From the IMG/VR virus record IMGVR_UViG_3300018891_000001, positions 62,001 through 126,000 of that record: a DNA stretch of 64,000 nt. One strand, 5' to 3'. Numbering within the stretch: the stretch's first letter is position 1; each line of letters begins with the position of its first letter. Under the pieces are notes generated by a model. It was not told where the DNA came from, ran no database searches, and saw nothing but the letters and a program-made list of their open reading frames with translations. The position numbers were made by a program, and so were the translations under genes. This document shows, piece after piece, positions 1 to 19,554 of this stretch.

Positions 1-1
1 G

Positions 2-3000: not shown

Positions 3001-3133
3001 CTGGTTGCCAGGAGATAACTATTTTATTAATTTCCAAGTAGGAGATCCATACTCAAAGATTCCAAATGGAGAACGACGTTTACCGGGAGAGGCATATGAA
3101 GCTTTGCATGAACTTCATCCAGATGAGACTGGT
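2..3133 (+). CDS. Exon 1 (5'-partial) of a giant virion-associated protein, possibly tape-measure-like or ejected; joined to 4340-6184 after intron removal
   Basis: The frame is open from base 2 (ANTIPGGLLHLRD...), so the track start at 26 is not the true start. It ends ...ELHPDETG at GGT 3131-3133, followed directly by group I intron structure. The tape-measure-like call rests only on size and position upstream of the hub/baseplate genes. Confidence 0.7.
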
Positions 3134-4339
3134 AAAATATTTGCCTGTCTATAAACATGGCACGAATTGCTGGAAACCCCTTAGAGCCTTGCGAGCTACA
3201 ACGGAACCGGTAACGGTAAACGTGAATGCTTGAAAATCGCAAGGATTGGGCAATCAGCAGCCAAGCATCTCTGGAAACGGAGATGAAGGTTCAGAGACTA
3301 TCGAAAGCTCCTACTATATCTCACCCTGACGAAACATGATATAATGGAGCAAGTAGAGTTATTTTACAGTGATGTAAAATAACGGCGTGCCATTAATTGC
3401 AAGGAGGATGTGTATAATGAAGTCATTGCATCAAAATAAAGAATGGTTAGAAGAACAGTATTCAAAGTATGGGACATCAACAATAGCAAAAATGGTCGGA
3501 AGAAATGATAAAACAATACAATATTGGTTGAAAAAGTTTAATATACCAATGCGAACAAGAAGTGAATCAATGAAAATAACCGAAAATCGCATTCATACTG
3601 TTGATGTCGATTATTTTAAAGAAATTGATACGGAAGAGAAAGCATACTTTTTAGGTTTTCTTATGGCTGATGCGAATTTATCAATCAGAACTGATAATAA
3701 ACATGTAGAAACAAAAAGCATAGATTTGACCATTCATAAAAGTGATGTTGAAATATTGATCAAATTAAAAAATGCAATTAAATGTAGCAATGAAATTAAA
3801 CCAAAAGGAAACAATATGAGATTAGCAATATATAATACACACTTTGCTGATAACTTGATTCATTGGGGTATTGCTGCAAATAAAACAGGGCATGAAGTTT
3901 TTCCAAATATATCCGAACATTTAAAGCACCATTTTTTAAGAGGATACTTTGATGGTGATGGATGTATTACTTGGAGTAAAAACGGGAGACTTCGAGGTAA
4001 AGTTCATTTTGTTAGCGGATATGAAATGATGAAAGGTATTAAAGATTTTATTGAGAGCAAAGGTGTACAGTATACAGATAAATCATTGCATCCTAAAAAG
4101 GGAGCAAATGCTTTTGAATTAGAAACAGCTACATTGCCAAATATAGCAAGAATATATGACATAATCTATAAAGATGCTACTGTTTTTTTAACCAGAAAGA
4201 AAAAACATTTTGATGCATTTATGGAGCAATATATTAATTCTCCTATTGCAATTAAAAGATATAGTCCGACCTTATACCGAAAGGTATAAGAGGCAAGCAG
4301 AAATGACTTGCCCCTCCTTTATTGGAGAGTAACAATGTG
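3134..4339 (+). mobile_element. Group I self-splicing intron (probably subgroup IA) with endonuclease ORF in loop L8
   Basis: P1: exon ACTGGT pairs with intron GCCTGT, with U.G at the splice site. P3 is ATGGCACG 3157-3164 / CGTGCCAT 3386-3393. Core elements: P AATTGCTGGAAA 3165-3176, Q AATCAGCAGCC 3252-3262, R TTCAGAGACTA 3290-3300, S AAGATATAGTCC 4256-4267. P7 is GACTA/TAGTC with bulged A3295. P8 is TAATTGCAA 3394-3402 / TTGCAATTA 4246-4254. P9 is CTTATACC-GAAA-GGTATAAG 4271-4290. Terminal G at 4339; P10 is exon-2 AAATA with intron TATTT. Splicing restores the frame (ETG|KYG). Confidence 0.93.
3417..4289 (+). CDS. Intron-encoded LAGLIDADG homing endonuclease with N-terminal HTH-like region
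   Basis: Two LAGLIDADG-like motifs (YFLGFLMADAN and HFLRGYFDGDG) and an N-terminal HTH-like segment (TSTIAKMVGRNDKTIQYWLKKFNIP). AAGGAGG at 3401-3407 favours ATG 3417 over the track GTG 3387. Confidence 0.88.
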   Translation: MKSLHQNKEWLEEQYSKYGTSTIAKMVGRNDKTIQYWLKKFNIPMRTRSESMKITENRIHTVDVDYFKEIDTEEKAYFLGFLMADANLSIRTDNKHVETKSIDLTIHKSDVEILIKLKNAIKCSNEIKPKGNNMRLAIYNTHFADNLIHWGIAANKTGHEVFPNISEHLKHHFLRGYFDGDGCITWSKNGRLRGKVHFVSGYEMMKGIKDFIESKGVQYTDKSLHPKKGANAFELETATLPNIARIYDIIYKDATVFLTRKKKHFDAFMEQYINSPIAIKRYSPTLYRKV

Positions 4340-6184
4340 AAATACGGAGCTTTTGATAAATTTAAAATTTTGGCAGATGTGGCTCCGTGGAGTGATGAAT
4401 ATAAATTCTGGAGTCAATATCTCCTAGATAACTTAGAAGATCCGGAATTGCGACAAGAAGCAGCCGAAATCCGCAGACAAGTCTCCATGCGGAAACAAAA
4501 ATATGATTTTCAACCATACCGATTTAAAGGACAAAATCTCGTATATGAAGAAGTAACTGTAAAAAAGTTTTTAGATGATTACACGTTTTTAACTGAAGAA
4601 TTCGGAGATCAGCCAATCCGAATTGCCGGAGTAGAATATCGCAAAAAAGCATCAGGAGTACTGCAAAATTACTTCCAAGAAGGAGACAAAGTGGTTATTG
4701 GAGTTGCCGCTGATCCAACGCAACGAATTGCTAATGACACTTACGGAACGATGCGAGCCGTTATTTTTAATGAATTAGGAAATATCAATCAAGATATTAT
4801 TCGTCGTGGTCGCATGGTCGAAAACCTGAATGATTTCTCTCCTGCGGGCGTGCATGCTCGTTTTACTCCGGAGGAAATTCGAAGAGGGGCACGATGGGAA
4901 ACAGTAGCTCATGCAAGTACACCATTGAATACCAAGTTCTTGCAAGTGCGAACCGCTTTAGAGGAATACGAACGAGATCAGATTTATGGAAAAGACTGGG
5001 CAACATGGGAAAACTTCATGCTAAGTGACTATGTTATCCCAACCTTGCAAGGATTAGGACGTTTTGATAGTCCATTGTGGTCCATGGCAGCAGGAGCCGT
5101 AACCGGACTTGTTCTTGGTCGCTTCTTTTTACGAGGAGGCCGACCAACCAAAATTGCTGCAATATTAGGAGGATTGTATGGTTTAGGCTCTAATTTCTTC
5201 TTTAAATACTATGAAAATAAGCATGGTGAAGCGTGGATTCCAGAGCGTCGAAGAATTGAACATGAAATCAATGAGTATTTCGATATCTTAAAATACCTCA
5301 AATACGAGGGACTCTATCAAAAAGCAAGAGAAGAAATTGCTCATGCCACGGGATATGATATTGAAGATTTGGCTCAATTGATTCAAAACCAAAAAGAATT
5401 AAACAAGCAACGAAAAGAGGAACTGGAGGCAGAAAAGAAACGGCTTTATATTGAGCAGCCAAAAGGATGGGAAAAGCGCAGAGAAGAGATCAATCAAGAA
5501 CTAGAAACAATTTCTTTAGATTGGGAAAATCTCTATTTGCCAGAAGCCTTCTTGCAAGCATTACAGTATCGACAAGAGCGTGATACCACATTATATGCGA
5601 TAGATCCATATGGTGATCGTTTGCAAGTCATGAGAGCTTTTCCGTACAAAGACAAATGGTTCTTTAATGCGTTTGTTGAAGCGAATCAAGAAGAACGAGA
5701 ACGTATTTTGGAACTAGTTCCTGAAAACCAACGCCGGATTTATAAGGCTATTTGGGGAATGGGGCTTGAACCTCAAAAGCCTCTAGAGTATTACATGCAA
5801 AAATACCGAATCCCTGATTGGACTTGGGAAGGCTGGCGACCGGAATATAATTTGGAAGACATTAAAGTCAAAGTAGTTCAAGAATATGGATTAGATTTGT
5901 CTGATTTCAATTTCTGGGAGGATGATGTAGAAGCCTCTCAATACGTTCCAGACTTGCATCCAGATGGAAATGAGTTTAAAGGTGAACCGGCTTCCAACTT
6001 TACTGGCTTTCAAGCATTGCGACAAAATCTGATTCATATTCTACAAGGATATGGCTTGCAAGATGTTCGTGTTACCGTATATCCATCCACTGGCTCTGAA
6101 ACCAATGTTCATTTCACCTATACTGAAGACCGAAGTGAAGAGATTGAAGAACATCTCCGCAAGTATGGAAGCCGATATGTGTAA
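4340..6184 (+). CDS. Exon 2 of the giant virion-associated protein; contains a degenerate SNase-like region and a Gly/Ala-rich hydrophobic hairpin
   Basis: In frame with exon 1 after splicing (KYGAFDKFKILADVAPWS...). SNase-like pattern at ~4547-4815; hydrophobic WSMAAGAVTGLVLGRFF...IAAILGGLYGLGSNFFF at ~5078-5205. Confidence 0.75.
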   Translation, partial: KYGAFDKFKILADVAPWSDEYKFWSQYLLDNLEDPELRQEAAEIRRQVSMRKQKYDFQPYRFKGQNLVYEEVTVKKFLDDYTFLTEEFGDQPIRIAGVEYRKKASGVLQNYFQEGDKVVIGVAADPTQRIANDTYGTMRAVIFNELGNINQDIIRRGRMVENLNDFSPAGVHARFTPEEIRRGARWETVAHASTPLNTKFLQVRTALEEYERDQIYGKDWATWENFMLSDYVIPTLQGLGRFDSPLWSMAAGAVTGLVLGRFFLRGGRPTKIAAILGGLYGLGSNFFFKYYENKHGEAWIPERRRIEHEINEYFDILKYLKYEGLYQKAREEIAHATGYDIEDLAQLIQNQKELNKQRKEELEAEKKRLYIEQPKGWEKRREEINQELETISLDWENLYLPEAFLQALQYRQERDTTLYAIDPYGDRLQVMRAFPYKDKWFFNAFVEANQEERERILELVPENQRRIYKAIWGMGLEPQKPLEYYMQKYRIPDWTWEGWRPEYNLEDIKVKVVQEYGLDLSDFNFWEDDVEASQYVPDLHPDGNEFKGEPASNFTGFQALRQNLIHILQGYGLQDVRVTVYPSTGSETNVHFTYTEDRSEEIEEHLRKYGSRYV

Positions 6185-6199
6185 AAGGGAGTGGATTAC

Positions 6200-9100
6200 A
6201 TGAATGAACCATGGAACCAAACACCAGAAGATATCCGAGTGAATATTGTATTACCTAAATCAAAAGATTTAAAAGTCGTTGCCGTTTCCGATCCGGTCTA
6301 TTATCAAGACCGGACGGATCCCGAATATGAAAAACGAATTACTCGTCATATTGATTTTCTGAATCGGCAATCGGCAATTTTAGAACGGGATAAAAACTCG
6401 TTGGCTCTTGAAATGCAAGAACTCATGCGTAAAAAAGAGACGATAATTTATGATGGACAACGAGTATATCGCTTGTTTCATTCCTTAAATCAACGACACA
6501 ATCAACAAACTTTAGAGCTATTTGAAGAGTTTTATCGTAGCCTAAAAAATAATCAAAATCATTATATTTTTGATATCGAAACATTTGGAGATGTTCATGA
6601 TCGACAAAAACCATACAGCATTTCCGAGATTTCAATTAATGAATTTGACCGACAAGGCAATTTGGTTCGCAAAGGCTATAACACCGTTTTGCGACAAGAT
6701 CAAAAAACAGTAGATTATTTGCAGCAACTTATTGATGATATTCGAAAAGACAAATATGCTTACAATCGTTTAGAAGATTGGGAAAAACGGAGTCTAGTGG
6801 ATTTAATGCGTTATGCAAGCTATATGAGTGAGTATGATGAACATGCGTTTTCTCATAACCTTAAAACTCAAGAAATCCAACATCATTCCATTATTAAATC
6901 GGTGTTTGACCACCAAGACCAAGTGCATCATGGAAAGGTATTACGTAATATTGACCAATATCTTTTGTATATGCAATCAGGACTTGATTATCTAAAAAAA
7001 CATGGTACACCAGTGCAAACAGCATTAAAACAGATCGAAAAATTATTTCAAGAGAATGCGGATCGTTTTTTCCTTACTTATAACGGGTTAGTCTTTGACT
7101 GGCCAGTGTTAAAAGCTTTTGCAGAAAAACATGGGGTCACTTTGTCATCTATTAAACATCTTGACTACTTAAATGCCATTCGAACCGTATTTTCGGACTC
7201 TGATGTATTAAAACGAAGAATCAATCCAGATTTTCAGCGGAGTGCATACAGTAAAGATAAACTAGCTGCTATGCGTCAAGCATTAAATTTAGAAACACAA
7301 GATGAAGCGCACAACGCACAAATTGATACACATGACACAGCAAAAGTGATAGCTGCTACCTATGAACATCTTCATCAAGAAATCCAAAATTCGAAATTTC
7401 CGATTCGAGAAGGATTCAACTATCATCCTACGTATTTAACATGGAATGATGAGCCTCTTCGTCACGGACAAAAACTATTTGCCATTGGAGGAGCAATGGC
7501 CGTACAAGATGGAGACGAATCTTTCCGAGTGACCTTAGATGAAAATGGAAAATGGGTGCCTGTCACTAATGATTTCAATAAAACCGTCATTAATAGTAAA
7601 ACCTTCTATGAATTTGCTGGTATGCAGAAATTAGAAGAAGGACAGCTGGCATTTCGATTTTTTGATCCAGACCGAAATGAATATGCCTATATTGTTCGTA
7701 GCGGAGAACATGCATTTCAGGAACTGCAAGACTTTGTACAAAGTCGTTTTTACAATTGGGATGGATTAGACCCTCAATATCAACGAGATATCTTGCACGC
7801 TGCTGAAGCAGACCGAGCCCGTCGTCGTTATCAGCGTTTCTTTAGTATGGATGGAGCCGGCAAAGGATTGGCAATTATAGATGGGGAAATCGTCGAAAAA
7901 GGGACAGCAGGTTTTTCTGGCTTAAAACGAATGATTGCCAATGCCGAAATCATGAAAACTCATTTAGAAAGTAAAGGAGCCCAGTATCGTGCCAAAGTAG
8001 AAGAACTCATAGCACAAGGAATGAGTCGAAATCAAGCCAAAAGAGAAGCACGAAAAATACGGGCACATCAATTGCCAAATCACCTAGATTTTGAAAGTTT
8101 ATGGGATGAAAGTCGGCAGAAATACGTTATTAATGAAGCAGAAAGAAAGCAATTCTTTAAAATGTATAAGCGTTTAATCGATGAACTTCCATATCTAAAA
8201 GAGGTAGTAGAAACCATTGATCAAGAATTTGCAGAAGAAATTCAACAAGCAGCTGCTATCAAAGATAACCGAAAACGACGCAGGGCTCTTATGGAGATTA
8301 ATCAAAAACGAGATCAAGCCCTTATGAATTACTATCGATACATGACAGATGCCGTGGGAGAACCTGAACAAGAAAGGACATTAAAAGAATTTGAAAATCG
8401 GCGTTTGGCTTTTTATGACCCGGAAGTAGACGATTATCGCACCTTGGATTTTACCACTGTCAAAAGTGCAAGAGATAGTTTATATCAATATGCTCGACGT
8501 GGCACAAAAGAAAGCCGTAATCAGCAAAAAGTGATGAAAGAGCGGTTAGATTTCCTTTTTCGTAATTTACAAACTCAGCATATCATTACTCCAGGTCAAT
8601 ACTCTTATTACTCCGATGTATTATGGAACACCGATTCGGTATGGCATGCAGCAGGAGAGATTGCTATCAATATGAGACAACGAAATAACGGAAAATATGA
8701 AACTACCTTAACAGAGCCATCCATGATTCAAAATCAAAATATTCAGCAGCTTACCAAAGAACAAAATCGACAGTTTATTCAAAGAGCTATCGAGGACACT
8801 CGTAATGCTCAATTGATTATCAATATGGACTCAGCAACAGGTAAGAAACTGATATTAGGTGAAGAAATAAGAAAAACATTAGAGATTTTGGATCAACAGC
8901 GTTTCTCACGACTAGAACCAAAAAACTATGAAGCATTAGAAGAATTGATTGCAAGTATTCGTAAAACTGATCGTACGAAACAAATTGCATTAGTAATGGA
9001 TACTCATTCTAATGATGGATTAATGAAAGCCTATGTCTATAACGGAAAAGATAGTATAACAGTTCGCAATCAATTAGCTCGAGGAACAACTCCTACACAA

Positions 9101-12100
9101 GCGTTAGAAATCGTCATGCCTTTGATTAATCAGGCCGGCACACATAAAGTAGGAGGCTTGGTATTAAATGCACATAATATAGCTGTTCGAGAAGGAAAAA
9201 ATATCGAGTTAATTTCAAGTGCCCAACATATTGCACGAGGATATGCTGATAGAATGGGATCTATTATGAAGGTATTCAATGAAGGAGATATAGAATGGGC
9301 CAATACACTCGCACGACGTACTCTTCGTAATCAAATTGAAAGCATGTCAGGAATCCAGAGAAATATGGAATTCGGAGAAAACGACACATATGTATGGGCG
9401 CAAAATCAGTCCGACATGTTAAAACAAGCACACGTCAAGCTAGGTAATGCTATGGTAGAAGATTTGTTTTACAACGGCTTTGAAGGTGTGCGACTAACAG
9501 AAAAAGATTTCTACGATCCGGATGATGTGTTTATAGATGACGGACATGGAAACCGAATCTTGCGCAAGGGTGTAACTTTAGAAGATGTAAAAATGGAAAC
9601 CAGCCACAAGATGCTGATGCTCATGCCTAAATGGGCAGAGGAACGGTTAAAGATTCCTTTATTTACATCTTCTGTGAAAGCTGAGCACGTATCCAAAGCG
9701 ATTTTATCAATGGAGGACATTCGCCAACTGATTCCTTATGGTACATTTTACAATCACGGCCGTGATAACGCTGTACAATATATGAATGCTTATCTAATTA
9801 ACTCTCAAACAGAAGAACGTTTAAGAAATATTAAAGGAGTCAGTCGGGATAGTTTATTGAAAACTCCTCGCCAACTAGAATATGAGTCTATTCAGCCTAA
9901 CAAAGTCAGCATGAATATGAGAATTGCTTATATGACGCAAGATGAACTACGTAAACGTGTAGAACAAATGATAAAAGATTCAAGAGGGCAACAACTTCTT
10001 TCCGAATTAGGATTTTTAGATGAGACAGGAAAACTTCAGTATGAAAAACTACCACGACTGTATGAGCAGCAGGGCATTATTGCTAAAGATTTAATGGATG
10101 CGTTAGAAGTCAATAATGAAAAGCGATATGACAAAGGAAAACGATTTGAATTAGAAAAAGGGTTGCAAATAGGTAGCACTATTCAACCAGGTCAGTTATT
10201 AGGATACCGAATCCATGATAATGGATACCGAGAAGCTATACGTTATGAAGGCACCAAAGTAGCCCAGCTTATTGATGGTGTGGAAGAAGGACGAGATTTA
10301 ATTGTACGTTGGCAAACCCAACCATTTAAATTTATGCTTGACGGCGAAAAAATGACCGATTCCCCCGTAGATCGTCGATTTATTGAATATCTTACTGGTC
10401 GAAATGACATTGTAGGGATTATTAACCCAGATGTGGCGAAACACCACGACTTTGGAATGTTAATGTCGGGGGAAGCTAGATTGCTAGCTGAAGAAATTAA
10501 AAAACTAAGCCCATCCAAACAAAAAACCGCTAGAAAAATTATTGAAAATGGTGGTATTGGGCTCAAGTGGAATCAAGAAATGGGCGGGTTCATTGATCAT
10601 AGTTTTGATTTGCAAATTGCTCGGGAACAATTTGATAAAGTATTTGAGCAACTCAACAAAGCCAAAATTCGTATTTCTCCAATAACTCCAACAGGATTGC
10701 GTATGGGTATTTTAGAAGGCCGTATGTCCAAAGTAGCCAATTATAGTAAAGTGATCGACCACAACGGAAGGCAAGTGATTGGCTATGAAGAAGGATATAA
10801 TGCTGAAACTGGCGAATACGAAGTTCGTAAAGTATATGCAGATGGCAGAGATGGAGTACAATGGGGACACCGAGAGATGGGGGTACTAAAGAGCTATGGG
10901 TTAGAGAAAACCTATCAACATGTTCATCAAATTATGTTGGAACAAGCTCAGCAAACTCATCGTCTCCAAGAAACTAGAGCCGTTGCTGAATCATTGCGAT
11001 ATCTGACACATGAGGATCGTATTCAAACAGAGGCATTGAACATAGAAGACTTTGACTCTCTTCCAGAAATGTATCGTAGTGAGAATACGTACAAAGGAAC
11101 GATTTTTGATCGTGAAAAAGTAAAAAGTTTAGTAAGCCAGTATAAAAATCATAATGCCATGAATGAGCATGGTTTCTGGCTAGAATTGCCTTCAGTAAAA
11201 CGTCCTGATGGTAAGCTCGATAAAGTTACGATCCGCATGGACGAGACAGGGACATTAAAAGAAATTGATAAAATCTTTATTCCATTTACGAAACTGGAAG
11301 GGGCACATGGCGATATCCATTTGCGGGATTTGCAAAAACAAATTGCTCGTATTTATGAAAAAGCGGAAGAAGTGCAACGAGCAACCAGTCTTCAAGATGC
11401 ACGAATGGCCCATCAAGAATTGCAGCAAGCGGTTCGAGGATATGTCAAACAATCATTTAAAGAACTCACCTCTTCTAAAGGTATGCTATTTGGAGATGTC
11501 TTTAAAACCCATATGAATAATTCGGCTTCAGGACTTTTTAAACTCATGGATTATCATACGTCTCAAAAAGTGATGGAAAAATGGGGAGAAGGAGAGTACA
11601 CGATTATTTCTGAAGATACTGCCAAGAAGATGGGCATTTACGATCGATTAAAAGCCGGAAACGAATTGTATGTAGCAAATGTCCGTTACCCAACATTCCA
11701 TGATGGAGCCATGCAGTTTACAAAACTCAAAATGGCCGACTGGGTAAAAGAGGGAGAGTTTCATACTACATCCTTTGCATCCATGCTTCAAAATGCAGAC
11801 TCTGACGGAGACTACTCGCATATTGTCTTTGTTGATGATAAAGACATTCAAGAAGAATGGAGAAGGGCACATGATCAAACACGACAAAAATTTGAAGAAC
11901 GATGGAGAGCACATTTAGAAAAAACGGACCCAACACACCCATCATATCAAGAAGCAAAACCGGTAAGTATTCGAGATACGGAAGCAAAGGGAGTAGCTGA
12001 TGAGCAATGGAAACAGTTTGTTTTGAAGCGAATCGGAAACAATGATCAAGAAACAGCATCTAAAATCGGTAAGATGACCATCGGACGAGCTTCCAACTTA

Positions 12101-13105
12101 AACTTATTTATTCGTCAAGTGGCAGACCGGTACTATGCCGATAACCCGGAAATTAACAATAAAATAAAAGAATTTGGTCGGGGACTCGAACAAAAGCTCA
12201 TCGACGCAAAGCACGGAGCTGAACCAGCGGGCTTAAAAATGATTGATGCCATTTATGCAGGAAATTGGGAGAAAGCCTTTGAAATTGATAAGCAATATTT
12301 TGATGGCATGTTCCAAAAGGACTATTATATGAACGTGGTTGCTCAGGAAATGCCAATGGCACTTACTCGAATGAGAGAGGGACTTCGCACAGCAGGCTTT
12401 AAATTTGGAACAAGTACCGGAATCAATGCCAACTATGGAGTTCAGAAGTTAATCGATTTATTATACGGACAAGCAGATCCACAAGAGTATGGGGGAGATA
12501 ATAAAGCATTAGCCATGTGGCATAAATATCTTCAAAGCGAAGGCATGAACATAGATCTTCATGGAGAACAACAAGCTCCTATGCCTATTCAACGATTAAC
12601 AACAACTCCAATGAAAGAGCGAATAGATGAAGGAAAAGGAATATTAAATCGAGCTCGCAATACGTTGAGTGATGCTATTGGAGGAAGTATTTCGGGTGTC
12701 AAAGGGAAGATTAGTCAACTCTTTGATAGTATCCAAAACATGAATCCAAAAACCGCTGCCCTCTTGGGAGCAGGTCTTGCAGTAACGGGTATTGCAGGGT
12801 ACAATATTCTTAACAGTGATAAACCTGTAATGCATTACAATAATGAAAGTCAAGAAAGAAAACGAGAACCTCGTCCGGCTTTGCAAGTAGATATGAATGA
12901 TTACCATTCAACACAAAATGCATCCATTCATATTGAGGCTTCCGGAAGGAAAGTAGGTTCTGATCAAATGTCTCATATGGTGGCTCAAGGAATGAGAGAG
13001 TCCGGCATGAATGCAGGACCAACCCGCATTTCTGTGACCCATCGGGATAATACTCAACAATTAAACCGAGTTTGGTATCGGGATAAAGTACGAGAGAATA
13101 TTTAG
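6200..13105 (+). CDS. Putative virion single-subunit two-barrel RNA polymerase fused to an N-terminal DEDDh 3'-5' exonuclease, with a C-terminal hydrophobic segment
   Basis: Beta-prime-like NVRYPTFH (11678-11701) and NADSDGD (11792-11812). Beta-like YEQQGII, IQPGQLLG, FKFMLDGEK (Lys codons 10328 and 10349) and DIVGIINP (10406-10429). Exo I FDIET (D 6572, E 6578), Exo II YNGLVFD (D 7097), Exo III HNAQID (H 7310, D 7325). C-terminal AALLGAGLAVTGIAGYNIL. RBS AAGGGAG 6185-6191 favours ATG 6200 over GTG 6191. Confidence 0.75.
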   Translation: MNEPWNQTPEDIRVNIVLPKSKDLKVVAVSDPVYYQDRTDPEYEKRITRHIDFLNRQSAILERDKNSLALEMQELMRKKETIIYDGQRVYRLFHSLNQRHNQQTLELFEEFYRSLKNNQNHYIFDIETFGDVHDRQKPYSISEISINEFDRQGNLVRKGYNTVLRQDQKTVDYLQQLIDDIRKDKYAYNRLEDWEKRSLVDLMRYASYMSEYDEHAFSHNLKTQEIQHHSIIKSVFDHQDQVHHGKVLRNIDQYLLYMQSGLDYLKKHGTPVQTALKQIEKLFQENADRFFLTYNGLVFDWPVLKAFAEKHGVTLSSIKHLDYLNAIRTVFSDSDVLKRRINPDFQRSAYSKDKLAAMRQALNLETQDEAHNAQIDTHDTAKVIAATYEHLHQEIQNSKFPIREGFNYHPTYLTWNDEPLRHGQKLFAIGGAMAVQDGDESFRVTLDENGKWVPVTNDFNKTVINSKTFYEFAGMQKLEEGQLAFRFFDPDRNEYAYIVRSGEHAFQELQDFVQSRFYNWDGLDPQYQRDILHAAEADRARRRYQRFFSMDGAGKGLAIIDGEIVEKGTAGFSGLKRMIANAEIMKTHLESKGAQYRAKVEELIAQGMSRNQAKREARKIRAHQLPNHLDFESLWDESRQKYVINEAERKQFFKMYKRLIDELPYLKEVVETIDQEFAEEIQQAAAIKDNRKRRRALMEINQKRDQALMNYYRYMTDAVGEPEQERTLKEFENRRLAFYDPEVDDYRTLDFTTVKSARDSLYQYARRGTKESRNQQKVMKERLDFLFRNLQTQHIITPGQYSYYSDVLWNTDSVWHAAGEIAINMRQRNNGKYETTLTEPSMIQNQNIQQLTKEQNRQFIQRAIEDTRNAQLIINMDSATGKKLILGEEIRKTLEILDQQRFSRLEPKNYEALEELIASIRKTDRTKQIALVMDTHSNDGLMKAYVYNGKDSITVRNQLARGTTPTQALEIVMPLINQAGTHKVGGLVLNAHNIAVREGKNIELISSAQHIARGYADRMGSIMKVFNEGDIEWANTLARRTLRNQIESMSGIQRNMEFGENDTYVWAQNQSDMLKQAHVKLGNAMVEDLFYNGFEGVRLTEKDFYDPDDVFIDDGHGNRILRKGVTLEDVKMETSHKMLMLMPKWAEERLKIPLFTSSVKAEHVSKAILSMEDIRQLIPYGTFYNHGRDNAVQYMNAYLINSQTEERLRNIKGVSRDSLLKTPRQLEYESIQPNKVSMNMRIAYMTQDELRKRVEQMIKDSRGQQLLSELGFLDETGKLQYEKLPRLYEQQGIIAKDLMDALEVNNEKRYDKGKRFELEKGLQIGSTIQPGQLLGYRIHDNGYREAIRYEGTKVAQLIDGVEEGRDLIVRWQTQPFKFMLDGEKMTDSPVDRRFIEYLTGRNDIVGIINPDVAKHHDFGMLMSGEARLLAEEIKKLSPSKQKTARKIIENGGIGLKWNQEMGGFIDHSFDLQIAREQFDKVFEQLNKAKIRISPITPTGLRMGILEGRMSKVANYSKVIDHNGRQVIGYEEGYNAETGEYEVRKVYADGRDGVQWGHREMGVLKSYGLEKTYQHVHQIMLEQAQQTHRLQETRAVAESLRYLTHEDRIQTEALNIEDFDSLPEMYRSENTYKGTIFDREKVKSLVSQYKNHNAMNEHGFWLELPSVKRPDGKLDKVTIRMDETGTLKEIDKIFIPFTKLEGAHGDIHLRDLQKQIARIYEKAEEVQRATSLQDARMAHQELQQAVRGYVKQSFKELTSSKGMLFGDVFKTHMNNSASGLFKLMDYHTSQKVMEKWGEGEYTIISEDTAKKMGIYDRLKAGNELYVANVRYPTFHDGAMQFTKLKMADWVKEGEFHTTSFASMLQNADSDGDYSHIVFVDDKDIQEEWRRAHDQTRQKFEERWRAHLEKTDPTHPSYQEAKPVSIRDTEAKGVADEQWKQFVLKRIGNNDQETASKIGKMTIGRASNLNLFIRQVADRYYADNPEINNKIKEFGRGLEQKLIDAKHGAEPAGLKMIDAIYAGNWEKAFEIDKQYFDGMFQKDYYMNVVAQEMPMALTRMREGLRTAGFKFGTSTGINANYGVQKLIDLLYGQADPQEYGGDNKALAMWHKYLQSEGMNIDLHGEQQAPMPIQRLTTTPMKERIDEGKGILNRARNTLSDAIGGSISGVKGKISQLFDSIQNMNPKTAALLGAGLAVTGIAGYNILNSDKPVMHYNNESQERKREPRPALQVDMNDYHSTQNASIHIEASGRKVGSDQMSHMVAQGMRESGMNAGPTRISVTHRDNTQQLNRVWYRDKVRENI

Positions 13106-13110
13106 GGGGT

Positions 13111-16100
13111 ATGCTCATGTCATTCCAGCAATATATTCCCTATGGGGGATTGCTTGAGCATCACTTACGCATAGGGGACACGATTTTTTACGTGCCCCCT
13201 ACTGCTATTAGTGTGCATCGTCAAATGAAAAATCAACGAATATCTATTTTACGGGCACGCAATAGTTTGCCAGTAGAATCCGGTTATTTTGACCGGGTCA
13301 TTGAATTTACTTTGTTCTTTCCGGATATTGAATCCATTAATAACGAGCTCCGTCCTTTATTGGCTCAGGTAAAGAAATGCCCGTTTCTTCCGATTGAAAA
13401 TACGTATTTGAATGATATTCATAAAATTGAAGCCGTTACGATTGTAGGAGTTACTGTACAAACCACTCCAGGATTCCCTAATACGCTTCAAGCTCAAATT
13501 CAATGTTATGCCTTTGAGCCGGCAAGTTATATTGCGGATGAGGATGACCGAACGTTTGACGAAATGTTTGACTGGCCACTATTCCGTTGGTATTACAGTC
13601 GAAATTTAGATCCTCAAATCGGAAATATGTTTCACACGTATTTTGAACCTTTGTATGGAGAGTTGGATCATTCTTTTAAATTTCGGATTGCCGCTATGGA
13701 TGATTTAGATGCGATTGCCGCATGGAGAAAAGAAAAGAAAAAACTCATTCGAGATTTTCTAAGAGAAACCCGGGAAAACTTTTGGGGAAATGAAAAACGA
13801 GAAGAAGAATTTCATCAAAAATATGACAAGCTATATCAAAAAGCCATGTTTGAGTACCAGCTTCATTATGAAGATTGGAATCTTCCGGGACTTGTTTTAA
13901 CAGACCTATCTATTGGTTTTGAAAATAATATCGCATCCTTACAACTGCAAGAAGATGCTTCTCCAACTCATCAATACTTAGGTTCACAAGATACGATTTT
14001 AGTAGCCCGTTTTCAAACCGATAACATAGAAACCATTGCCGAATTAGAAGCTCTTGTCAATCGAGCCACGTATATGACTCGCACTTATCATAAAGAGGTA
14101 TCGAATGGATTTTTAGAGTTTGATCACCCGTTGGCTCGATTATTTGGTGTGCGAAATGTTACGATCGAGGATATGCAAACTAATACGATTGAAGGGTATC
14201 CCGGAGCACATGAAGTTGTTTTAACGATGATTGCCTATAACCGAGCAGAACGAAAATTAAATGAGGTACAATGGCTGTCAGAAACGGCTCAATGGGATAT
14301 TAGCAAATATGAGGAGCTTTCTTTATTAGGGATTTTTACAGATTTTGACCTTGGAATTTCAGAAGATTATCAAGGTTCGGATATCATCATGGACATGCCT
14401 CTTATTAGTCCATTTGCACGTTTTGTACGGTTTATGTGGGATCGCCCAATGTTTGAACAGATGTTTTTAGGTTTGAAAAACTTTTTAGCCGGGCATCACA
14501 AAACACCTGCTGATTTAGATCAAGAAGGAGTTAAACGTATCATTTATGATGAATCCATTAAACAATTTTTCCGAGCAGCTGAAGTGTATCCCGATTTAGA
14601 GCTTCCGACATATGCAGAAGTAGCTATGGCAGGATTTCATGTGGAAAACACAAACGATGGCGTGTTTGTTGATCCAGACTTTTTCATTAAATATAAAAAA
14701 GGAACTCTATTTTGGGAAAATTTATTAAAATCCATTGAGCAAAATTATCAGGTTGTGTTACGAGATGCTTTAGGCGGAGAAGCAGTCGTTCATGGTGGTG
14801 AAATTAAAAATATCAATAAAGTAACCAGTGAGCAAATTCAAAAAGGAAAAAAGGACTTCCAAGAAGCTTCTGGTCAACAGCAAATGGATGCTTCTCCAAT
14901 TGCAAAAGATCTCATCGATACGGGCAATTTAAAAAAGGAACAAATGGAAGCTTTGATTCGTCAGAAAGCTCAACAGTTTGGTTTAAATCAGAACTTCCCT
15001 TTGGCTTTTGCTCGTGCTATGGATGAGGAATTAAAGCAGTTTTATGATAAAGGAATGAATGCGAAACAAGGAAAAGTTGTTAATCGTAACAGTAGTGCAC
15101 CTGTTATGATGAACAATCACTTTGAGTTTTACACGAATCCTGATGGAACCATTGACGGTGAGTATATTGGAGTGATGAAAGTTCGACGTTTATATGGCTC
15201 CAATGTGAATTTGCTAGGAAAAAACATCGAGTACAATGTGGAAACTGGTATCCGAAAAATGGCCGACTTTTATGCTGAATTAGCTCGTATTCATGCGAAT
15301 TCTGCCAATGGAGGCAAGAAAATTTATAACGAACAATACGTTTACGATTTGTTTGGTCTAAAAAATAAAAGAGGCACATTTGATGTAGAAAAAGCACGGT
15401 TTGCCGGAGTTGTCATGTTGTATCTTGGATTTGACCGAGAATATATGGCACTTGTTAAAGATAATAAACGACCACCACGGCAAATTGTGCAATTGGTGCA
15501 AAAAGTTTTGGATAACGTAAAAAATGAAGAACAATGGACTAATCAGCAAATTCACAATCGGGTAAAGAATTTACCAATCAAAGATTTTAAATCTGTAGGA
15601 ACTCAGGCAAGTGCAGTTACTTCTACCACGAGTGCTTCTTATGTAGATGATAATAATCAAATTTATAAAGGCATGCTTCATGATATGCTGCGTTATGATA
15701 AACGAGGTCGATTGGTTCGAGCATTCCCAACATTTTTCCTTACTTTTATTGATGAGGGTCAATATATCGGAACTATCAAACTGTCCGATCAATTTTTTCA
15801 GTATAAAGCAGTCATGGATATCATGTACACCAATAATCGAAAAGAAGCATCAAGTACATTAGTCTTAGAAATGTCTAATATTTATGGGACTTTAGATGAT
15901 GCCGAAAAAGGAATGGATTTAACTCACACAGGTTACTCAGAAGTCTTTAAAGCCATGACACTTCCGGGAGCTGTAACACGGGAAGCAGAGCGTTCCCGTC
16001 ACCGAAATCCAAATTACTATAAATCGATTATGCTTCGCACTGGGACTCGTATTCATTTTCGAATGGGATATGGCTCTAATCCAATGGAAATGCCAACAAT

Positions 16101-19100
16101 TATGAATGGTACCATTACCTCAATTACAAATAATAAAGAATCCATTACGGTCATTGCACAGGATGACGGAATCGAATTAACGAATAAAATCCGGGCTGAT
16201 GTGAACGAAACAACAGACGGAGGATTTCTTTTTTCTAAGAAAGAGCCTACCGAAATTGTTGATGAATTATTGACGGATTCCCAGGGATTCTTTAGGAACT
16301 TGTGGGCCGGATTATCAAACAAAGAATTTGAGAATCACAGTCTTGGAATTATGCATTTTGGTAGTCAACAGCAGCCACAAGGATGGGCACAATTACAATC
16401 CTTCTTGGGTGGTATCCCGGTAGGAGCTGCAGCTGGGATTATGGGAGGAGTGATCGGTGCTATTGCTGGATCTCTTTCCGGAGGACTCTTTGGTGGTGTA
16501 CTCGCTGGAAAAGATAGTCGTACCATTGGGGAAATCAATATGAATGTCTATCAAACGACAGGGCTTACTAATGAAGAACATGATCAGTGGTGGACGAAAA
16601 TCAAAGATGCTTTTGGTATTGGGAAAGCGGATGAACCCGGCATTAATATCAATCTATTTGATAAAAGTGTATGGGATGTCTTAAATATTTGTGCTTCTGT
16701 TGGAGATGATCATATCGTAGCGGTGCATCCATTTGGATTCCGTAACACTATCTTTTCTGGAAAACCTTATTTTCCGCTTCATTATGACTATATCGTGGAT
16801 GCTAAACAAGAAAAAGTGCTAGGAACAGCGGTCAAACCGTTTCGACAGTTTCATGTGTATGATAGTGCTACCTCGATTTTAGATAACAGTATTGAAGCAA
16901 CAGAAGAATATATACGAACAGTAGCTGTAGGTGTATACATGAATGAAGGGGAAATGGATACCACCTCTCCTATTTTCGTGGACACAAACATTTGGCCAGA
17001 AAAACAACGAGTTGTTAATATTGATACGACAATGAATGCGCAAGGAGTGCGGTTGATTCAGCATATTCCTCTCATTGGAGGACTATTAAATAAGCCATTG
17101 AAATGGTACTTCGATGAAGGAGTAGCAATTAAAATAGCAGCCGCTGGTTTACGAGATTATGTCAAAGACATGTATGATGGATACTTAACCGTTATGGGGG
17201 ATCCAAGTGTTAAGCCTTATGATCAAATGTGGGTTTTTGATACGTATAACGATATCGTCGGTCTTGCAGAAGTAAAAGAAGTTACCCAAATCATGAATCA
17301 CCAAATGGGATACATCACAATGATCAAACCGGATGCAGTGGTTGTTAATAGTGACCGGCGAGCTATGGGATTTGCCATGACACTCCAAGCCATTGCCGGA
17401 AGTGCCCTAATCACATATGCTCTGCGTAAAAAATTGAAAACATCTAAATATGCAGGACATCTTCCTATTTTAAATGCAGCGTGGGCAGCGACTCAGAATC
17501 AATTTGATCGATTGAAAGAGCGTTTTCAAACCAATCGGGTAACTAAAAAGTTGTATGATACTCTAACAGGAAAACGACCATCTAATGAGAACGATATTTT
17601 ACAAAAGGAATCTAAACGAAAAAGTGTGCGAGCAAAAGCAGAAGATGTAGCTCGATGGGCCAAAAACGGAATGTTGAATCAACTAGAAAAATGGACCGGA
17701 GAAAAAGCTCGCAACAATCTTGAGGAAATTTTGAGAAACAGTCGGGAATTTGGCTATAACACCTTTAATCATCTTCGATTAAAAGAAAAAATCACTCCTC
17801 TTTTAACAAGTGGAAGTCGAAAGCTTCGAAAACTCAAAGGAGTCGGGGAATATGCACGTATGGCGTGGGCAGGAACTCATGCTGCAGCAGGACCAATTGG
17901 ATGGATTGCTTTTGCCATTGAAGCTTTAGTGATTCATTTAATTACTGCCACTGTAGCAGAATTTATTGAGCGATGGCTCTTTACAAGGCAAGCTGTCATG
18001 ATTGCTCCTCTTATCAAAGGAGGATTGGAGTTCACCGCAGGAATTAATGGTCATAAAGGATCAGTGATTGGAGATCCCCCGGACTTTTGGCAAAGATTTA
18101 TGACCAACGAATTTTCCGCTGTTTTACTAGGATTTTTTGGAGTGGATGCATGGAAGTATCGCCAAGATTATGTAATGGAAAATGATCTTCAAATGCAAAC
18201 AAATTCCTCTGTTTCTCGTATCAATGTCAATAGTATGGCACAAGATTTATTGCAGCATTTTCGGAAACAACCACGGAACGTACCAGAATTGCAACACTTG
18301 TATGAAGAGGATCGCAAAGCAGCATTAGAACAAGTCAACCGGCGTTTGGCATTACTAAATTCTCGATACACCAAAGCTGTTCACCCAGAAGAAGAAAAGA
18401 GTTGGGAGGAATGGAAAAAACAAATCGGGGATTGGTTTTCAGACCTTTGGGAGCAAATCAAATTACTTTTTGGTGGAAAAGATGATGGACAAGTTTGTAT
18501 TCCAAAGGGAGATGTGCCAACCAACGGAAAAGCCGTGAATCTATCCAAATACTTTAGTGTGATCGGACCAAAAATTGAAGAAGAATGTAAACGTCAGGGA
18601 TTAAGTCCTTACGCAGAAATTCTAAAAGCAAAATGTATGCAAGAATCAGGAGGAAACTACCTCAAATATCCGGATGTTATGCAAGCATCAGAATCATTAG
18701 GAAAACCAATCGGATGGATTAAAGATGTAGATTTATCCATTCGTCAAGGTGTGAAATATTTTGGTGAGATTATTAAGAAATGTAATGGAGATATTAAACT
18801 TGCCCTGCAATCATACAACTACGGAAAAGGCTTTATTGATTACGCCATGAAACGAGGAGGCAAATATACACCGGAATTGGCATGGTCGTTTGCTGAAGAA
18901 ATGGTGAAGAAATATGGAAGAATTTCACGTATTCCTCCGGGATATGGAGACTCAAAATATGTTGAACGAGTACTTCGTTATTATCAAGGGGATCTTCCAA
19001 GTGGGGAATGTGAAAATGCAGTAGGCAATGGTCCGGGTGGAGCAAGTTCATGTCCATCTGTAACCGGAAGAGAGGGAAAGAGAAAATATCAAACAAGTGG

Positions 19101-19554
19101 AGAAGGATTAACAGATTTGCGCACAATTCCGCAGCGACCATTTGGCCTTGCTATTGTAGGTGGAACAAGTAAAGTACGACCTGGAACCGCAGAAGCTTTA
19201 GTTAATATGGCTCTTCTTTACAAGAAAGCAACAGGCAAAACGTTTAAAGTTACCAGTGGAAATCGACCAGGAGATCCTAATTGGCATGGAACCGGATGGG
19301 CGGTGGATATTGATACACCTAATACCATGCGAATTATTAATGGCAAAATGCGATTCCCAAATGGAACGGATAAAAACGATGCCCGTGCTTTATGTCAAGC
19401 TGCTATTGAAGCAGGTTTTCGTGGTCTATATTTTGGTGATTGGGATATCGTGCAAGAGATGAATCAGAAATACGGGGCAGGAACAATGACATATGATCCG
19501 GGTGGTCACTGGAATCATCTCCATTGCTCTTATCCAATTTGTAAGAAAAAATAG
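13111..19554 (+). CDS. Tail hub / tail-associated peptidoglycan hydrolase (lysozyme-like domain plus M15-type Zn peptidase at the C-terminus)
   Basis: CwlT-like lysozyme motifs MQESGG (Glu 18643), DVMQASES, SIRQGVKYF and ALQSYNYG at ~18550-18985. M15 motifs SGNR...WHGTGWAVD (His 19285, Asp 19306) and WNHLH (19510-19524). Located directly before the gpV/gp25/gpJ-like genes. Confidence 0.8.
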   Translation: MLMSFQQYIPYGGLLEHHLRIGDTIFYVPPTAISVHRQMKNQRISILRARNSLPVESGYFDRVIEFTLFFPDIESINNELRPLLAQVKKCPFLPIENTYLNDIHKIEAVTIVGVTVQTTPGFPNTLQAQIQCYAFEPASYIADEDDRTFDEMFDWPLFRWYYSRNLDPQIGNMFHTYFEPLYGELDHSFKFRIAAMDDLDAIAAWRKEKKKLIRDFLRETRENFWGNEKREEEFHQKYDKLYQKAMFEYQLHYEDWNLPGLVLTDLSIGFENNIASLQLQEDASPTHQYLGSQDTILVARFQTDNIETIAELEALVNRATYMTRTYHKEVSNGFLEFDHPLARLFGVRNVTIEDMQTNTIEGYPGAHEVVLTMIAYNRAERKLNEVQWLSETAQWDISKYEELSLLGIFTDFDLGISEDYQGSDIIMDMPLISPFARFVRFMWDRPMFEQMFLGLKNFLAGHHKTPADLDQEGVKRIIYDESIKQFFRAAEVYPDLELPTYAEVAMAGFHVENTNDGVFVDPDFFIKYKKGTLFWENLLKSIEQNYQVVLRDALGGEAVVHGGEIKNINKVTSEQIQKGKKDFQEASGQQQMDASPIAKDLIDTGNLKKEQMEALIRQKAQQFGLNQNFPLAFARAMDEELKQFYDKGMNAKQGKVVNRNSSAPVMMNNHFEFYTNPDGTIDGEYIGVMKVRRLYGSNVNLLGKNIEYNVETGIRKMADFYAELARIHANSANGGKKIYNEQYVYDLFGLKNKRGTFDVEKARFAGVVMLYLGFDREYMALVKDNKRPPRQIVQLVQKVLDNVKNEEQWTNQQIHNRVKNLPIKDFKSVGTQASAVTSTTSASYVDDNNQIYKGMLHDMLRYDKRGRLVRAFPTFFLTFIDEGQYIGTIKLSDQFFQYKAVMDIMYTNNRKEASSTLVLEMSNIYGTLDDAEKGMDLTHTGYSEVFKAMTLPGAVTREAERSRHRNPNYYKSIMLRTGTRIHFRMGYGSNPMEMPTIMNGTITSITNNKESITVIAQDDGIELTNKIRADVNETTDGGFLFSKKEPTEIVDELLTDSQGFFRNLWAGLSNKEFENHSLGIMHFGSQQQPQGWAQLQSFLGGIPVGAAAGIMGGVIGAIAGSLSGGLFGGVLAGKDSRTIGEINMNVYQTTGLTNEEHDQWWTKIKDAFGIGKADEPGININLFDKSVWDVLNICASVGDDHIVAVHPFGFRNTIFSGKPYFPLHYDYIVDAKQEKVLGTAVKPFRQFHVYDSATSILDNSIEATEEYIRTVAVGVYMNEGEMDTTSPIFVDTNIWPEKQRVVNIDTTMNAQGVRLIQHIPLIGGLLNKPLKWYFDEGVAIKIAAAGLRDYVKDMYDGYLTVMGDPSVKPYDQMWVFDTYNDIVGLAEVKEVTQIMNHQMGYITMIKPDAVVVNSDRRAMGFAMTLQAIAGSALITYALRKKLKTSKYAGHLPILNAAWAATQNQFDRLKERFQTNRVTKKLYDTLTGKRPSNENDILQKESKRKSVRAKAEDVARWAKNGMLNQLEKWTGEKARNNLEEILRNSREFGYNTFNHLRLKEKITPLLTSGSRKLRKLKGVGEYARMAWAGTHAAAGPIGWIAFAIEALVIHLITATVAEFIERWLFTRQAVMIAPLIKGGLEFTAGINGHKGSVIGDPPDFWQRFMTNEFSAVLLGFFGVDAWKYRQDYVMENDLQMQTNSSVSRINVNSMAQDLLQHFRKQPRNVPELQHLYEEDRKAALEQVNRRLALLNSRYTKAVHPEEEKSWEEWKKQIGDWFSDLWEQIKLLFGGKDDGQVCIPKGDVPTNGKAVNLSKYFSVIGPKIEEECKRQGLSPYAEILKAKCMQESGGNYLKYPDVMQASESLGKPIGWIKDVDLSIRQGVKYFGEIIKKCNGDIKLALQSYNYGKGFIDYAMKRGGKYTPELAWSFAEEMVKKYGRISRIPPGYGDSKYVERVLRYYQGDLPSGECENAVGNGPGGASSCPSVTGREGKRKYQTSGEGLTDLRTIPQRPFGLAIVGGTSKVRPGTAEALVNMALLYKKATGKTFKVTSGNRPGDPNWHGTGWAVDIDTPNTMRIINGKMRFPNGTDKNDARALCQAAIEAGFRGLYFGDWDIVQEMNQKYGAGTMTYDPGGHWNHLHCSYPICKKK

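Follow-up and report, generated by a model that had tools for sequence, protein, structure and literature searches.

A giant protein encoded in the tape measure position of a jumbo Bacillus-type phage is predicted to combine an exonuclease, an RNA polymerase and a conserved hydrophobic C-terminal module

The analyzed window is a 64,000-nucleotide stretch (positions 62,001 to 126,000) of the IMG/VR virus record IMGVR_UViG_3300018891_000001, and it opens within a block of tail and baseplate genes that contains three consecutive giant genes on the plus strand. The gene of giant 1 starts about 1,048 nt upstream of the window, and its exon 1, a 1,400-aa open reading frame, extends over positions 1–3133, homology to an uninterrupted 1,980-aa homolog ending at about 3133. 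Exon 2 (~614 aa) comprises positions 4340–6184. The exons were not joined, each being analyzed by reference only. Giant 1 is the counterpart of 0305phi8-36 gp145 and contains a conserved N-terminal Gly/Ala hydrophobic segment (aa ~27–50) and a weaker one in exon 2 (aa 252–270 of the ORF 4322–6184).

The exons are separated by a group I intron (3134–4339, +, approximate boundaries), which carries a LAGLIDADG homing-endonuclease ORF (3387–4289) matching Pfam LAGLIDADG_1/_3 and phrog_4645. The Rfam model RF00028 scored 39.7 bits (E 3e-8) at 3124–3458 and 27.7 bits at 4177–4289, both below the gathering score, while Rfam at gathering thresholds returned nothing over the whole window. The possibility that the intervening sequence is an intein was rejected, since it contains stop codons and bears the group I intron signature.

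Giant 2, the subject of this analysis, is encoded at 6191–13105 (+) and has 2,304 residues when counted from GTG 6191, although the likely true start is ATG 6200, behind the ribosome-binding site AAGGGAG. Its stop codon, TAG, is at 13103–13105, and the gene of giant 3 (13111–19554, +; 2,147 aa) begins after a 5-nt spacer at ATG 13111. An alternative start at ATG 13117 would give the 11-nt spacing seen in most relatives. Giant 3 is a gp27-like baseplate hub with lysin domains, the counterpart of 0305phi8-36 gp147, and contains Gly-rich hydrophobic segments at aa 1097–1133 and 1590–1624. These segments, as well as those of giant 1, are conserved in relatives.

The order sheath, tube, two chaperonins, giant 1, giant 2 and hub holds in this genome and in 7 of 7 relatives’ loci, with spacers of 4–14 nt. 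Promoter-like and terminator-like sites show no excess over shuffled sequence across the region. This is the slot assigned in the 0305phi8-36 literature to the tape measure protein, although giant 2 is one gene removed from the chaperonins because giant 1 intervenes.

Searches at the sequence level missed the polymerase of giant 2. Megablast and tblastn with the whole protein and with its last 175 residues gave no match among GenBank phages. Pfam, PHROGs and PDB sequence searches, including lenient thresholds and a family profile, found no RNA polymerase (RNAP) or tape measure protein (TMP) family, the only hit being a sub-threshold match to Pfam RNase_H_2. A look-alike search with exon 1 of giant 1 was uninformative.

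The AF2 model of residues 1–1200 (pLDDT 79) contains a predicted DEDDh 3′-5′ exonuclease domain at aa ~115–400 (6533–7390, +), with Z scores of 13–14 to ExoI, the DnaQ epsilon subunit, the PolC exonuclease, 3′hExo and REXO2. The Exo I (DxE), Exo II (NxxxFD) and Exo III (HxxxxD) motifs are present, and the corresponding residues D128/E130, N298…F302-D303 and H374…D379 are invariant.

The model of residues 1200–2304 (pLDDT 72.9, pTM 0.67) gave 483 Foldseek matches in the PDB at E ≤ 0.001, at least 50 of which are RNAP large subunits, of both β′ and β type. The predicted β (Rpb2)-like region comprises aa ~903–1600 (8897–10990, +). Its residues 903–1200 match residues 26–717 of 6j9e_C (Z 9.3), while residues 1–322 of the second model match 4c2m_B in VIA-align (Z 13.0, 243 residues aligned, rmsd 4.4), the match being to the C-terminal half of Rpb2/β. 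This region includes an SBHM-like insert (aa ~1309–1375) and two invariant lysines, K1380 and K1387, in the motif FKFMLDGEKMT, which were assigned by eye to the catalytic lysines. The predicted β′ (Rpb1)-like region comprises aa ~1603–2113 (10997–12529, +), and residues 407–914 of the model match 7ob9_A (Z 10.6, 396 aligned). It contains the invariant RYPTFH (aa 1832–1837) and NADSDGD (aa 1868–1874; 11792–11812, +), the latter being the metal-binding DxDGD signature of the β′ double-psi β-barrel. NADSDGD is invariant in 23 of 23 close homologs, and DxDGD is present in 45 of 48 distant full-length representatives. Further matches were to RDR2 (Z 10.2), QDE-1 (9.4), phi14:2 gp66 (7.2), P74-26 gp62 (7.2) and P23-45 gp96 (6.5). 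Both the β′-type barrel with its metal-binding DxDxD motif and the second, β-type barrel, which supplies basic residues to the active site in two-barrel RNAPs, are thus found in the predicted fold.

It may be asked whether this two-barrel module transcribes at all. It could instead be a primase-like or DNA-translocating motor, a polymerase working with the N-terminal exonuclease in proofreading or end processing, or an inactive structural relic. No sequence-level match to any RNAP family was found, a 3′-5′ exonuclease fused to a two-barrel polymerase is not reported for the virion RNAPs discussed in PMC10770324, and Hardies et al. raised a role in injection for the phage’s other polymerase. 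However, RxPTxH, NADxDGD and the two lysines, which are known as RNAP-specific, are kept across the family, the best structural matches are DNA-dependent RNA polymerases, and the retention of catalytic residues argues against a relic. This alternative is considered improbable, although polymerase activity itself is inferred.

The polymerase region is followed by a poorly conserved helical linker (aa ~2125–2187; 12563–12751, +), a conserved Gly/Ala-rich hydrophobic segment (aa 2188–2208; 12752–12814, +) and a 96-aa tail. The tail includes a conserved C-terminal domain (aa 2238–2304; 12902–13102, +) of predicted β-α-β-α structure, which ends in the motif DNTQQLNRxWYRDKV. AF2 places helices at aa ~2141–2195, although the whole C-terminal module has pLDDT below 50. 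The core of the hydrophobic segment, AALLGAGLAVTGIAGYNIL (aa 2189–2207; 12755–12811), is the only stretch of the protein with a Kyte-Doolittle mean of at least 1.3 (maximum 1.59). The first-pass annotation had described a polymerase-like protein ending in a helical stretch, a Gly/Ala-rich hydrophobic segment and a short tail, placed between two giants with similar segments and 5 bp from the hub gene, and this description is confirmed.

The hydrophobicity of the segment is not in itself significant, as a 19-aa window this hydrophobic arises in 807 of 2,000 shuffles of the protein. It is also marginal for a membrane helix, being 1.59 here and 0.9–2.1 in relatives, with several at 0.9–1.2. The significance comes from conservation. 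Within the close family, column identity is 0.75 for the segment and 0.72 for the C-terminal domain, as opposed to 0.63 overall and 0.47–0.54 for the flanking linkers, which makes them the best-conserved parts of the protein, and G+A content is 39% in the segment against 14% overall. A Gly/Ala hydrophobic segment lies 101–155 residues from the C-terminus in all 48 full-length representatives found among 1.84 billion proteins.

The C-terminal module provides a link to a protein found in virions. In 0305phi8-36 the same slot is occupied by gp146, which was detected in virions by mass spectrometry and called the hypothetical TMP (PMC2147016). An HMM built from the last 190 residues of 66 family members matches gp146 end to end at aa 2351–2529 of 2537 (E 2.6e-8 at Z = 1e6), as well as WH1 gp095 (1.5e-27) and Moorella phage CDS0031 (7e-10), but not the giant 1 proteins or the hubs. 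BLASTP and hhalign agree with this result, although pairwise BLASTP of the protein against gp146 and against Moorella CDS0026 and CDS0027 gave nothing significant. A language-model look-alike search placed the last 165 residues nearest a cluster named tail tape measure protein (score 0.90), which is only a weak lead. A complex prediction between the N-terminal 450 residues of the hub and the C-terminal 69 residues of giant 2 scored 0.00, which is no evidence either way.

Giant 2 could be the true length-determining tape measure, stored extended in the tube as proposed for gp146 and for P23-45 gp96, with the enzymes refolding only after ejection. The assignment of gp146 as TMP rests on tail length (PMC2147016), the slot lies directly before the hub, the C-terminal module is TMP-like, and P23-45 shows that an RNAP can be part of a ruler. 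On the other hand, AF2 predicts compact α/β enzyme domains, not long helices, over aa ~45–2120 (pLDDT 73–79), only about 180 C-terminal residues look tape-measure-like, and no TMP family matches in Pfam or PHROGs. Moreover, giant 1 lies directly after the chaperonins and has a near-constant length of 1,930–2,025 aa, while giant 2 varies from 1,873 to 2,959 aa. A tape measure in the strict sense is therefore not supported, and this reading is regarded as unlikely.

It is also conceivable, though unlikely, that giant 2 is a non-virion transcription or replication factor which merely happens to be encoded in the tail cluster, its C-terminal module serving, for example, to tether a replication or transcription factory to a membrane. 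Its domains look like ordinary soluble enzymes, no virion proteomics exists for the family, and the genome encodes another RNAP for phage transcription. This second polymerase is a 1,159-aa ORF (contig G000:C1 of the genome, ~14188–17667, –), which matches PF05183 at 34.8 bits against a cut-off of 23.8. However, the gene order is rigid and the genes are tightly packed within the tail and baseplate block in every lineage examined, the C-terminal module is homologous to that of a protein found in virions, and all 48 full-length representatives keep this module at the very C-terminus.

The most plausible interpretation, to which a probability of about 0.6 may be given, is that giant 2 is a tail-loaded virion RNA polymerase that is ejected into the host and carries a tape-measure-like C-terminal anchor. 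It belongs to a 0305phi8-36-like jumbo myophage with a 215,870-bp genome and direct terminal repeats. From the N- to the C-terminus it would comprise the exonuclease, a ~500-aa region of unassigned fold, a single-polypeptide β/β′-type two-barrel RNAP, and a ~180-aa module of helices, a Gly/Ala-rich hydrophobic helix, a spacer and a small domain. In this view, the module loads and holds the protein in the tail lumen or hub during tail assembly, as tape-measure C-termini do, and on ejection would keep it at the entry site, possibly by inserting into or lining a channel in the membrane. The polymerase would then transcribe the first-entering DNA, a plausible target being the gene of the second, YonO-like polymerase. 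The analysis itself establishes the predicted exonuclease and RNAP folds with their catalytic motifs, the conservation of the C-terminal module, its homology to the C-terminus of a proven virion protein, and the conserved gene order. The presence of giant 2 in the virion and tail, its ejection, membrane contact, polymerase activity, and the timing and targets of transcription are inferred, and the link to virions rests on about 180 residues of homology plus gene position. Folded domains of this size could not sit in a tail-tube lumen in their native state, and storage would require an unfolded or extended form.

The first-pass annotation had further proposed, citing the P23-45 precedent, that the intron-split protein, the exonuclease-RNAP and the hub-lysin may form an ejected trans-envelope machine that anchors transcription at the entry site, possibly coupling it to genome uptake. 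This interpretation is supported in part. The enzyme identity, the gene position, the group I intron in the upstream giant and the precedent itself all hold, whereas membrane spanning by the hydrophobic segment, a single machine formed by the three giants, and coupling of transcription to uptake are not shown.

A more speculative and rather unlikely possibility is that the C-terminal module is a portable signal for loading into the tail lumen and for ejection, which different sub-lineages of 0305phi8-36-like phages would use to deliver different giant enzymatic cargoes, exonuclease plus RNAP in most and exonuclease plus something else in the gp146 family. In the RNAP-bearing lineages the anchored polymerase would both start pre-early transcription and help draw the ~216-kb genome into the cell, while the exonuclease would prepare the entering DNA end or remove host nucleic acid.

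Only one tape-measure-associated virion RNAP has been described, that of the thermophile siphophage P23-45, in 2024. Giant 2 is likely a second, previously unrecognized kind of polymerase that a phage injects through its tail, and an independent case in contractile-tailed jumbo phages of Bacillus-type hosts would show that loading a polymerase through the tail is a recurring strategy. It would also reinterpret the long-standing “hypothetical tape measure” slot of the 0305phi8-36 lineage and add an RNAP family that Pfam, PHROGs and PDB sequence searches miss. No description of this family was found in the literature searched. The fusion of an N-terminal exonuclease to a virion RNAP appears to be without precedent and invites a mechanistic study. 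The system would be tractable, since the cultured phage WH1 carries a counterpart with the polymerase signature, the related isolates Edson and KLEB27-3 may carry one too, and family members are found on ~205–225-kb contigs in Bacillus subtilis group, B. cereus group and Priestia assemblies.

The best structural matches of the predicted polymerase are the β and β′ subunits of cellular and jumbo-phage multisubunit RNAPs, with Z 13.0 for β-type chains, 10.6 for β′-type chains and 11.5–11.7 for the β-like chains of AR9 and phiKZ. RxPTxH, NADxDGD and an SBHM-like insert are present, but in giant 2 the β and β′ parts are fused in one chain and much reduced, and no sequence-level match to Pfam RNAP domains or PDB RNAP chains was found.

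The protein gp146 of Bacillus phage 0305phi8-36 holds the same slot between the gp145 counterpart and the gp147 hub, is of similar size, shares the C-terminal module and has a DEDDh-type Exo I motif, at which a weak match to giant 2 was observed (E 0.005). There is no full-length homology, and the exonuclease motifs of gp146 lie mid-protein (aa ~1222–1689) rather than near the N-terminus. The gp146 family shows no DxDxD motif and no profile match to the RNAP region, and a search of the 0305phi8-36 and Moorella phage records with the RNAP profile gave no match. A virion RNAP is therefore not universal in the lineage and not obviously essential.

The crAss-like phi14:2 gp66 and the N4 vRNAP are likewise proteins of more than 2,000 residues with the polymerase in one polypeptide, presumed to be delivered with the DNA to start transcription, and gp66 also has the two-barrel fold (6vr4_B, Z 7.2, 418 aligned). 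The N4 enzyme is T7-like and not two-barrel. Both belong to short-tailed phages, are carried in the capsid and are not known to be encoded between tail chaperonins and hub, and neither has the exonuclease or this C-terminal module.

A close parallel is gp96 of Thermus phage P23-45, a tape-measure-fused virion RNAP (PMC10770324), of which giant 2 is not an ortholog. In both cases a two-barrel RNAP with a DxDGD motif is encoded in the tape measure position, the polypeptide carries hydrophobic segments (of only marginal hydrophobicity in giant 2), the proposed role is pre-early transcription at the entry pore, and the genome encodes a second polymerase, shown to be non-virion in P23-45 and presumed so here. 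However, the structural match is weak (8h2n_A, Z 6.5 over 100 residues), below those to cellular β and β′, and there is no sequence match. While gp96 has 5,002 residues, with the RNAP at the N-terminus (aa 327–1124) followed by ~3,800 residues of canonical tape with a metallopeptidase, in giant 2 the predicted RNAP fills aa ~900–2120 of 2,304 and only ~180 residues follow it. P23-45 has a non-contractile tail and its gp96 has no exonuclease, whereas the present lineage is a contractile-tailed jumbo phage of Bacillus type with a separate second giant, giant 1.

The window is bases 62001–126000 of a 215,870-bp virus record with direct terminal repeats, and the region in question lies in a run of same-strand genes, in which promoter-like and terminator-like sites show no excess over shuffled sequence. 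Three giant genes follow each other: giant 1, which starts ~1 kb upstream of the window and ends at 6184, giant 2 (P0001), which runs from 6191 to 13105 and encodes 2,304 residues, and giant 3 (P0002), which runs from 13111 to 19554 and encodes 2,147 residues. Upstream in the genome lie a 974-residue ORF, which by position and size is the sheath, a tube-sized ORF, and two small ORFs in the place of the 0305phi8-36 tail chaperonins, after which giant 1 comes next. Three further very large ORFs of 1,654, 1,669 and 1,854 residues (36790–41754, 41798–46807 and 50606–56170) lie downstream on the same strand.

Giant 3 matches phrog_20474 over nearly its whole length and carries Lysozyme_like and SLT domains. 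Its nearest relatives in GenBank phages are the hub proteins of Moorella phage MTATph1, of Bacillus phages WH1, KLEB27-3 and Edson, and 0305phi8-36 gp147, the T4 gp27-like baseplate hub. By eye, the last ~150 residues of the hub (18900–19554) show an H...D...HxH pattern like that of LAS-type cell-wall metallopeptidases, although Pfam gave no match there.

The first-pass annotation described giant 2 as a polymerase-like protein that ends in a tape-measure-style membrane segment and sits where a tape measure gene would, and this observation is borne out by the analysis. The Gly/Ala-rich hydrophobic segment comprises residues 2189–2207 (nt 12755–12811) and is the only stretch of the protein above a Kyte-Doolittle mean of 1.3, with a maximum of 1.59. 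The spacer to the hub ORF is 5 nt, as had been noted. The mechanically assigned ORF starts are, however, probably not the real ones. The likely start of giant 2 is ATG 6200, behind the good ribosome-binding site AAGGGAG (region 6184–6202), in agreement with the N-termini of the homologs, while the hub may start at the second ATG (13117; region 13103–13119) rather than at 13111, which would give a spacer of 11 nt, matching the 11–14 nt seen in most relatives.

Giant 1 and the hub do carry Gly/Ala-rich hydrophobic segments, as the same annotation had stated, and these are conserved. Giant 1, the gp145 counterpart, is indeed split, by a group I intron with a LAGLIDADG homing endonuclease. Homology to uninterrupted homologs of 1,961–2,019 residues stops at ~3133 and resumes at ~4340 with no residues missing, and the intervening ~1.2 kb (3134–4339) holds a LAGLIDADG homing endonuclease ORF (3387–4289) and gives two sub-threshold matches to a group I intron. 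In the seven relatives examined the gene is uninterrupted.

On composition alone the hydrophobic segment of giant 2 is not more than chance, since in 807 of 2,000 shuffles of the protein a 19-residue window is at least as hydrophobic. The case rests on conservation. In the 23-member close family the segment has a column identity of 0.75 and the C-terminal domain 0.72, which makes them the best-conserved parts, above the catalytic regions (0.64–0.65), while the flanking linkers score only 0.47–0.54. Gly and Ala account for 39% of the segment against 14% overall. An exhaustive profile search of 1.84 billion representative proteins found only 69 relatives, of which the 48 full-length ones have 1,873–2,902 residues. 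All 48 carry a Gly/Ala hydrophobic segment 101–155 residues from the C-terminus, in 45 of 48 a DxDGD motif lies some 420–500 residues from the end, and most have an FDIET-type exonuclease motif near the N-terminus. Family members at four loci in NCBI assemblies (L007, L009, L010 and L012) sit on contigs of 205–225 kb, the size of a whole phage genome, inside assemblies that include the B. cereus group, B. subtilis and Priestia megaterium, suggesting a carrier state or an extrachromosomal prophage.

Sequence searches say almost nothing about the identity of the protein, whereas structure prediction is informative. The model of residues 1200–2304 has a pLDDT of 72.9 and is confident to residue ~2124. 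Foldseek gives 483 PDB matches at E ≤ 0.001, of which the 50 inspected are all RNAP large subunits of both β′ and β type. An aligner independent of Foldseek places residues ~1200–1600 on the C-terminal half of Rpb2/β chains (4c2m_B: Z 13.0, 243 aligned, rmsd 4.4) and residues ~1603–2113 on Rpb1/β′ chains (7ob9_A: Z 10.6, 396 aligned), and an SBHM-like insert (residues ~1309–1375) also appears. Single-subunit enzymes rank lower, with RDR2 at 10.2, QDE-1 at 9.4, phi14:2 gp66 at 7.2, P74-26 gp62 at 7.2 and P23-45 gp96 at 6.5. The model of residues 1–1200, with a pLDDT of 79, shows a DEDDh exonuclease at residues ~115–400 (Z 13–14) and matches the N-terminal part of β at residues ~903–1200 (Z 9.3).

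The invariant residues fit these folds. They comprise the exonuclease residues D128/E130, N298...D303 and H374...D379, the motifs RYPTFH and NADSDGD, the lysines K1380 and K1387 in FKFMLDGEKMT, and IINP. In β and β′ these are the hallmark active-site motifs, although the assignment of motif to function is by eye. By predicted fold and motifs, the protein is therefore an exonuclease plus a fused β/β′-type two-barrel RNAP, and it is predicted as compact domains almost throughout, not as a helical tape.

In 0305phi8-36 the same slot holds gp146, a 2,537-residue protein that was found in virions by mass spectrometry and called the hypothetical tape measure, mainly from tail length. Hardies et al. 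could align only its last ~60 residues with the counterpart in BtI1/BwK1, and the same pattern is found here, as pairwise and profile comparisons match only the C-terminus. An HMM of the last 190 residues of 66 family members, evaluated at Z = 1e6, matches gp146 end to end at residues 2351–2529 of 2537 (E 2.6e-8), its relatives at 2e-13 to 2e-7, WH1 gp095 at 1.5e-27 and Moorella CDS0031 at 7e-10, but none of the giant 1 proteins or hubs used as controls. WH1 gp095 also matches the β′ region (hhalign E 4.5e-8) and has ADHDGD. The gp146 family (0305phi8-36 record L001:11573–19186 and the family alignment, A3) keeps DEDDh-type exonuclease motifs mid-protein (DIETTG at ~1222, H1684...D1689) and the C-terminal module, but profile and motif comparisons of this family gave no DxDxD motif and no detectable RNAP region in its other ~1,900 residues.

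The gene order chaperonins, giant 1, giant 2, hub is kept in 7 of 7 loci of the close family, and in 0305phi8-36, WH1 and the Moorella phage. In Moorella phage MTATph1 (L002:11730–19086) the giant 2 counterpart is in two pieces, CDS0027 with an exonuclease motif and CDS0031 with the C-terminal module, which are separated by a transposase gene and a second ORF that, read by eye, looks like an IstB-type helper. Either the gene tolerates disruption or this phage copy is defective.

Outside the window, at ~14188–17667 on the minus strand of the record (G000:C1, corresponding to 313–3792 of locus L004) and ~14–18 kb from one end, the genome has a 1,159-residue ORF that passes the Pfam RdRP (PF05183) cut-off. 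It is a YonO/QDE-1-like second RNA polymerase and the counterpart of 0305phi8-36 orf99, the YonO-like enzyme. This is the two-polymerase layout that Chaban et al. showed for P23-45, where the tape-measure-fused virion enzyme transcribes pre-early genes, including the gene of the non-virion enzyme (PMC10770324).

The best-supported reading is that giant 2 is a tail-loaded, ejected enzyme with a constant C-terminal anchor module. The analysis itself shows that this module is under stronger constraint than the active sites, is shared with a known virion protein and is encoded directly before the hub, whereas tail loading, ejection and enzymatic activity are inferred. The first-pass annotation went further and proposed that the three giants form an ejected trans-envelope machine that anchors transcription at the entry site, possibly coupled to genome uptake, and this interpretation is only partly supported. 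That the anchor spans a membrane, that the three giants act as one machine, and that transcription drives DNA entry remain inferences by analogy with P23-45. The hydrophobicity of the segment is marginal, as low as 0.9–1.2 in some relatives, and it could equally be a buried helix of an oligomeric bundle in the hub or tube. As to the length ruler, giant 1 is next to the chaperonins and has a constant size, which makes it at least as good a candidate as giant 2.

No description of this family was found in the literature searched, although not all of the key papers were covered and prior mention cannot be excluded. The jumbo-phage overview lists only the YonO-like enzyme for 0305phi8-36, and the family does not appear in the text examined of the survey of phages with two RNAPs that accompanies the P23-45 study (PMC10770324). 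The concept of an RNAP in the tape-measure gene is known from that one system. The present family differs from it in the kind of phage, the domain order, the lack of a long tape and the presence of the exonuclease, as well as in a polymerase fold that leans toward cellular β/β′.
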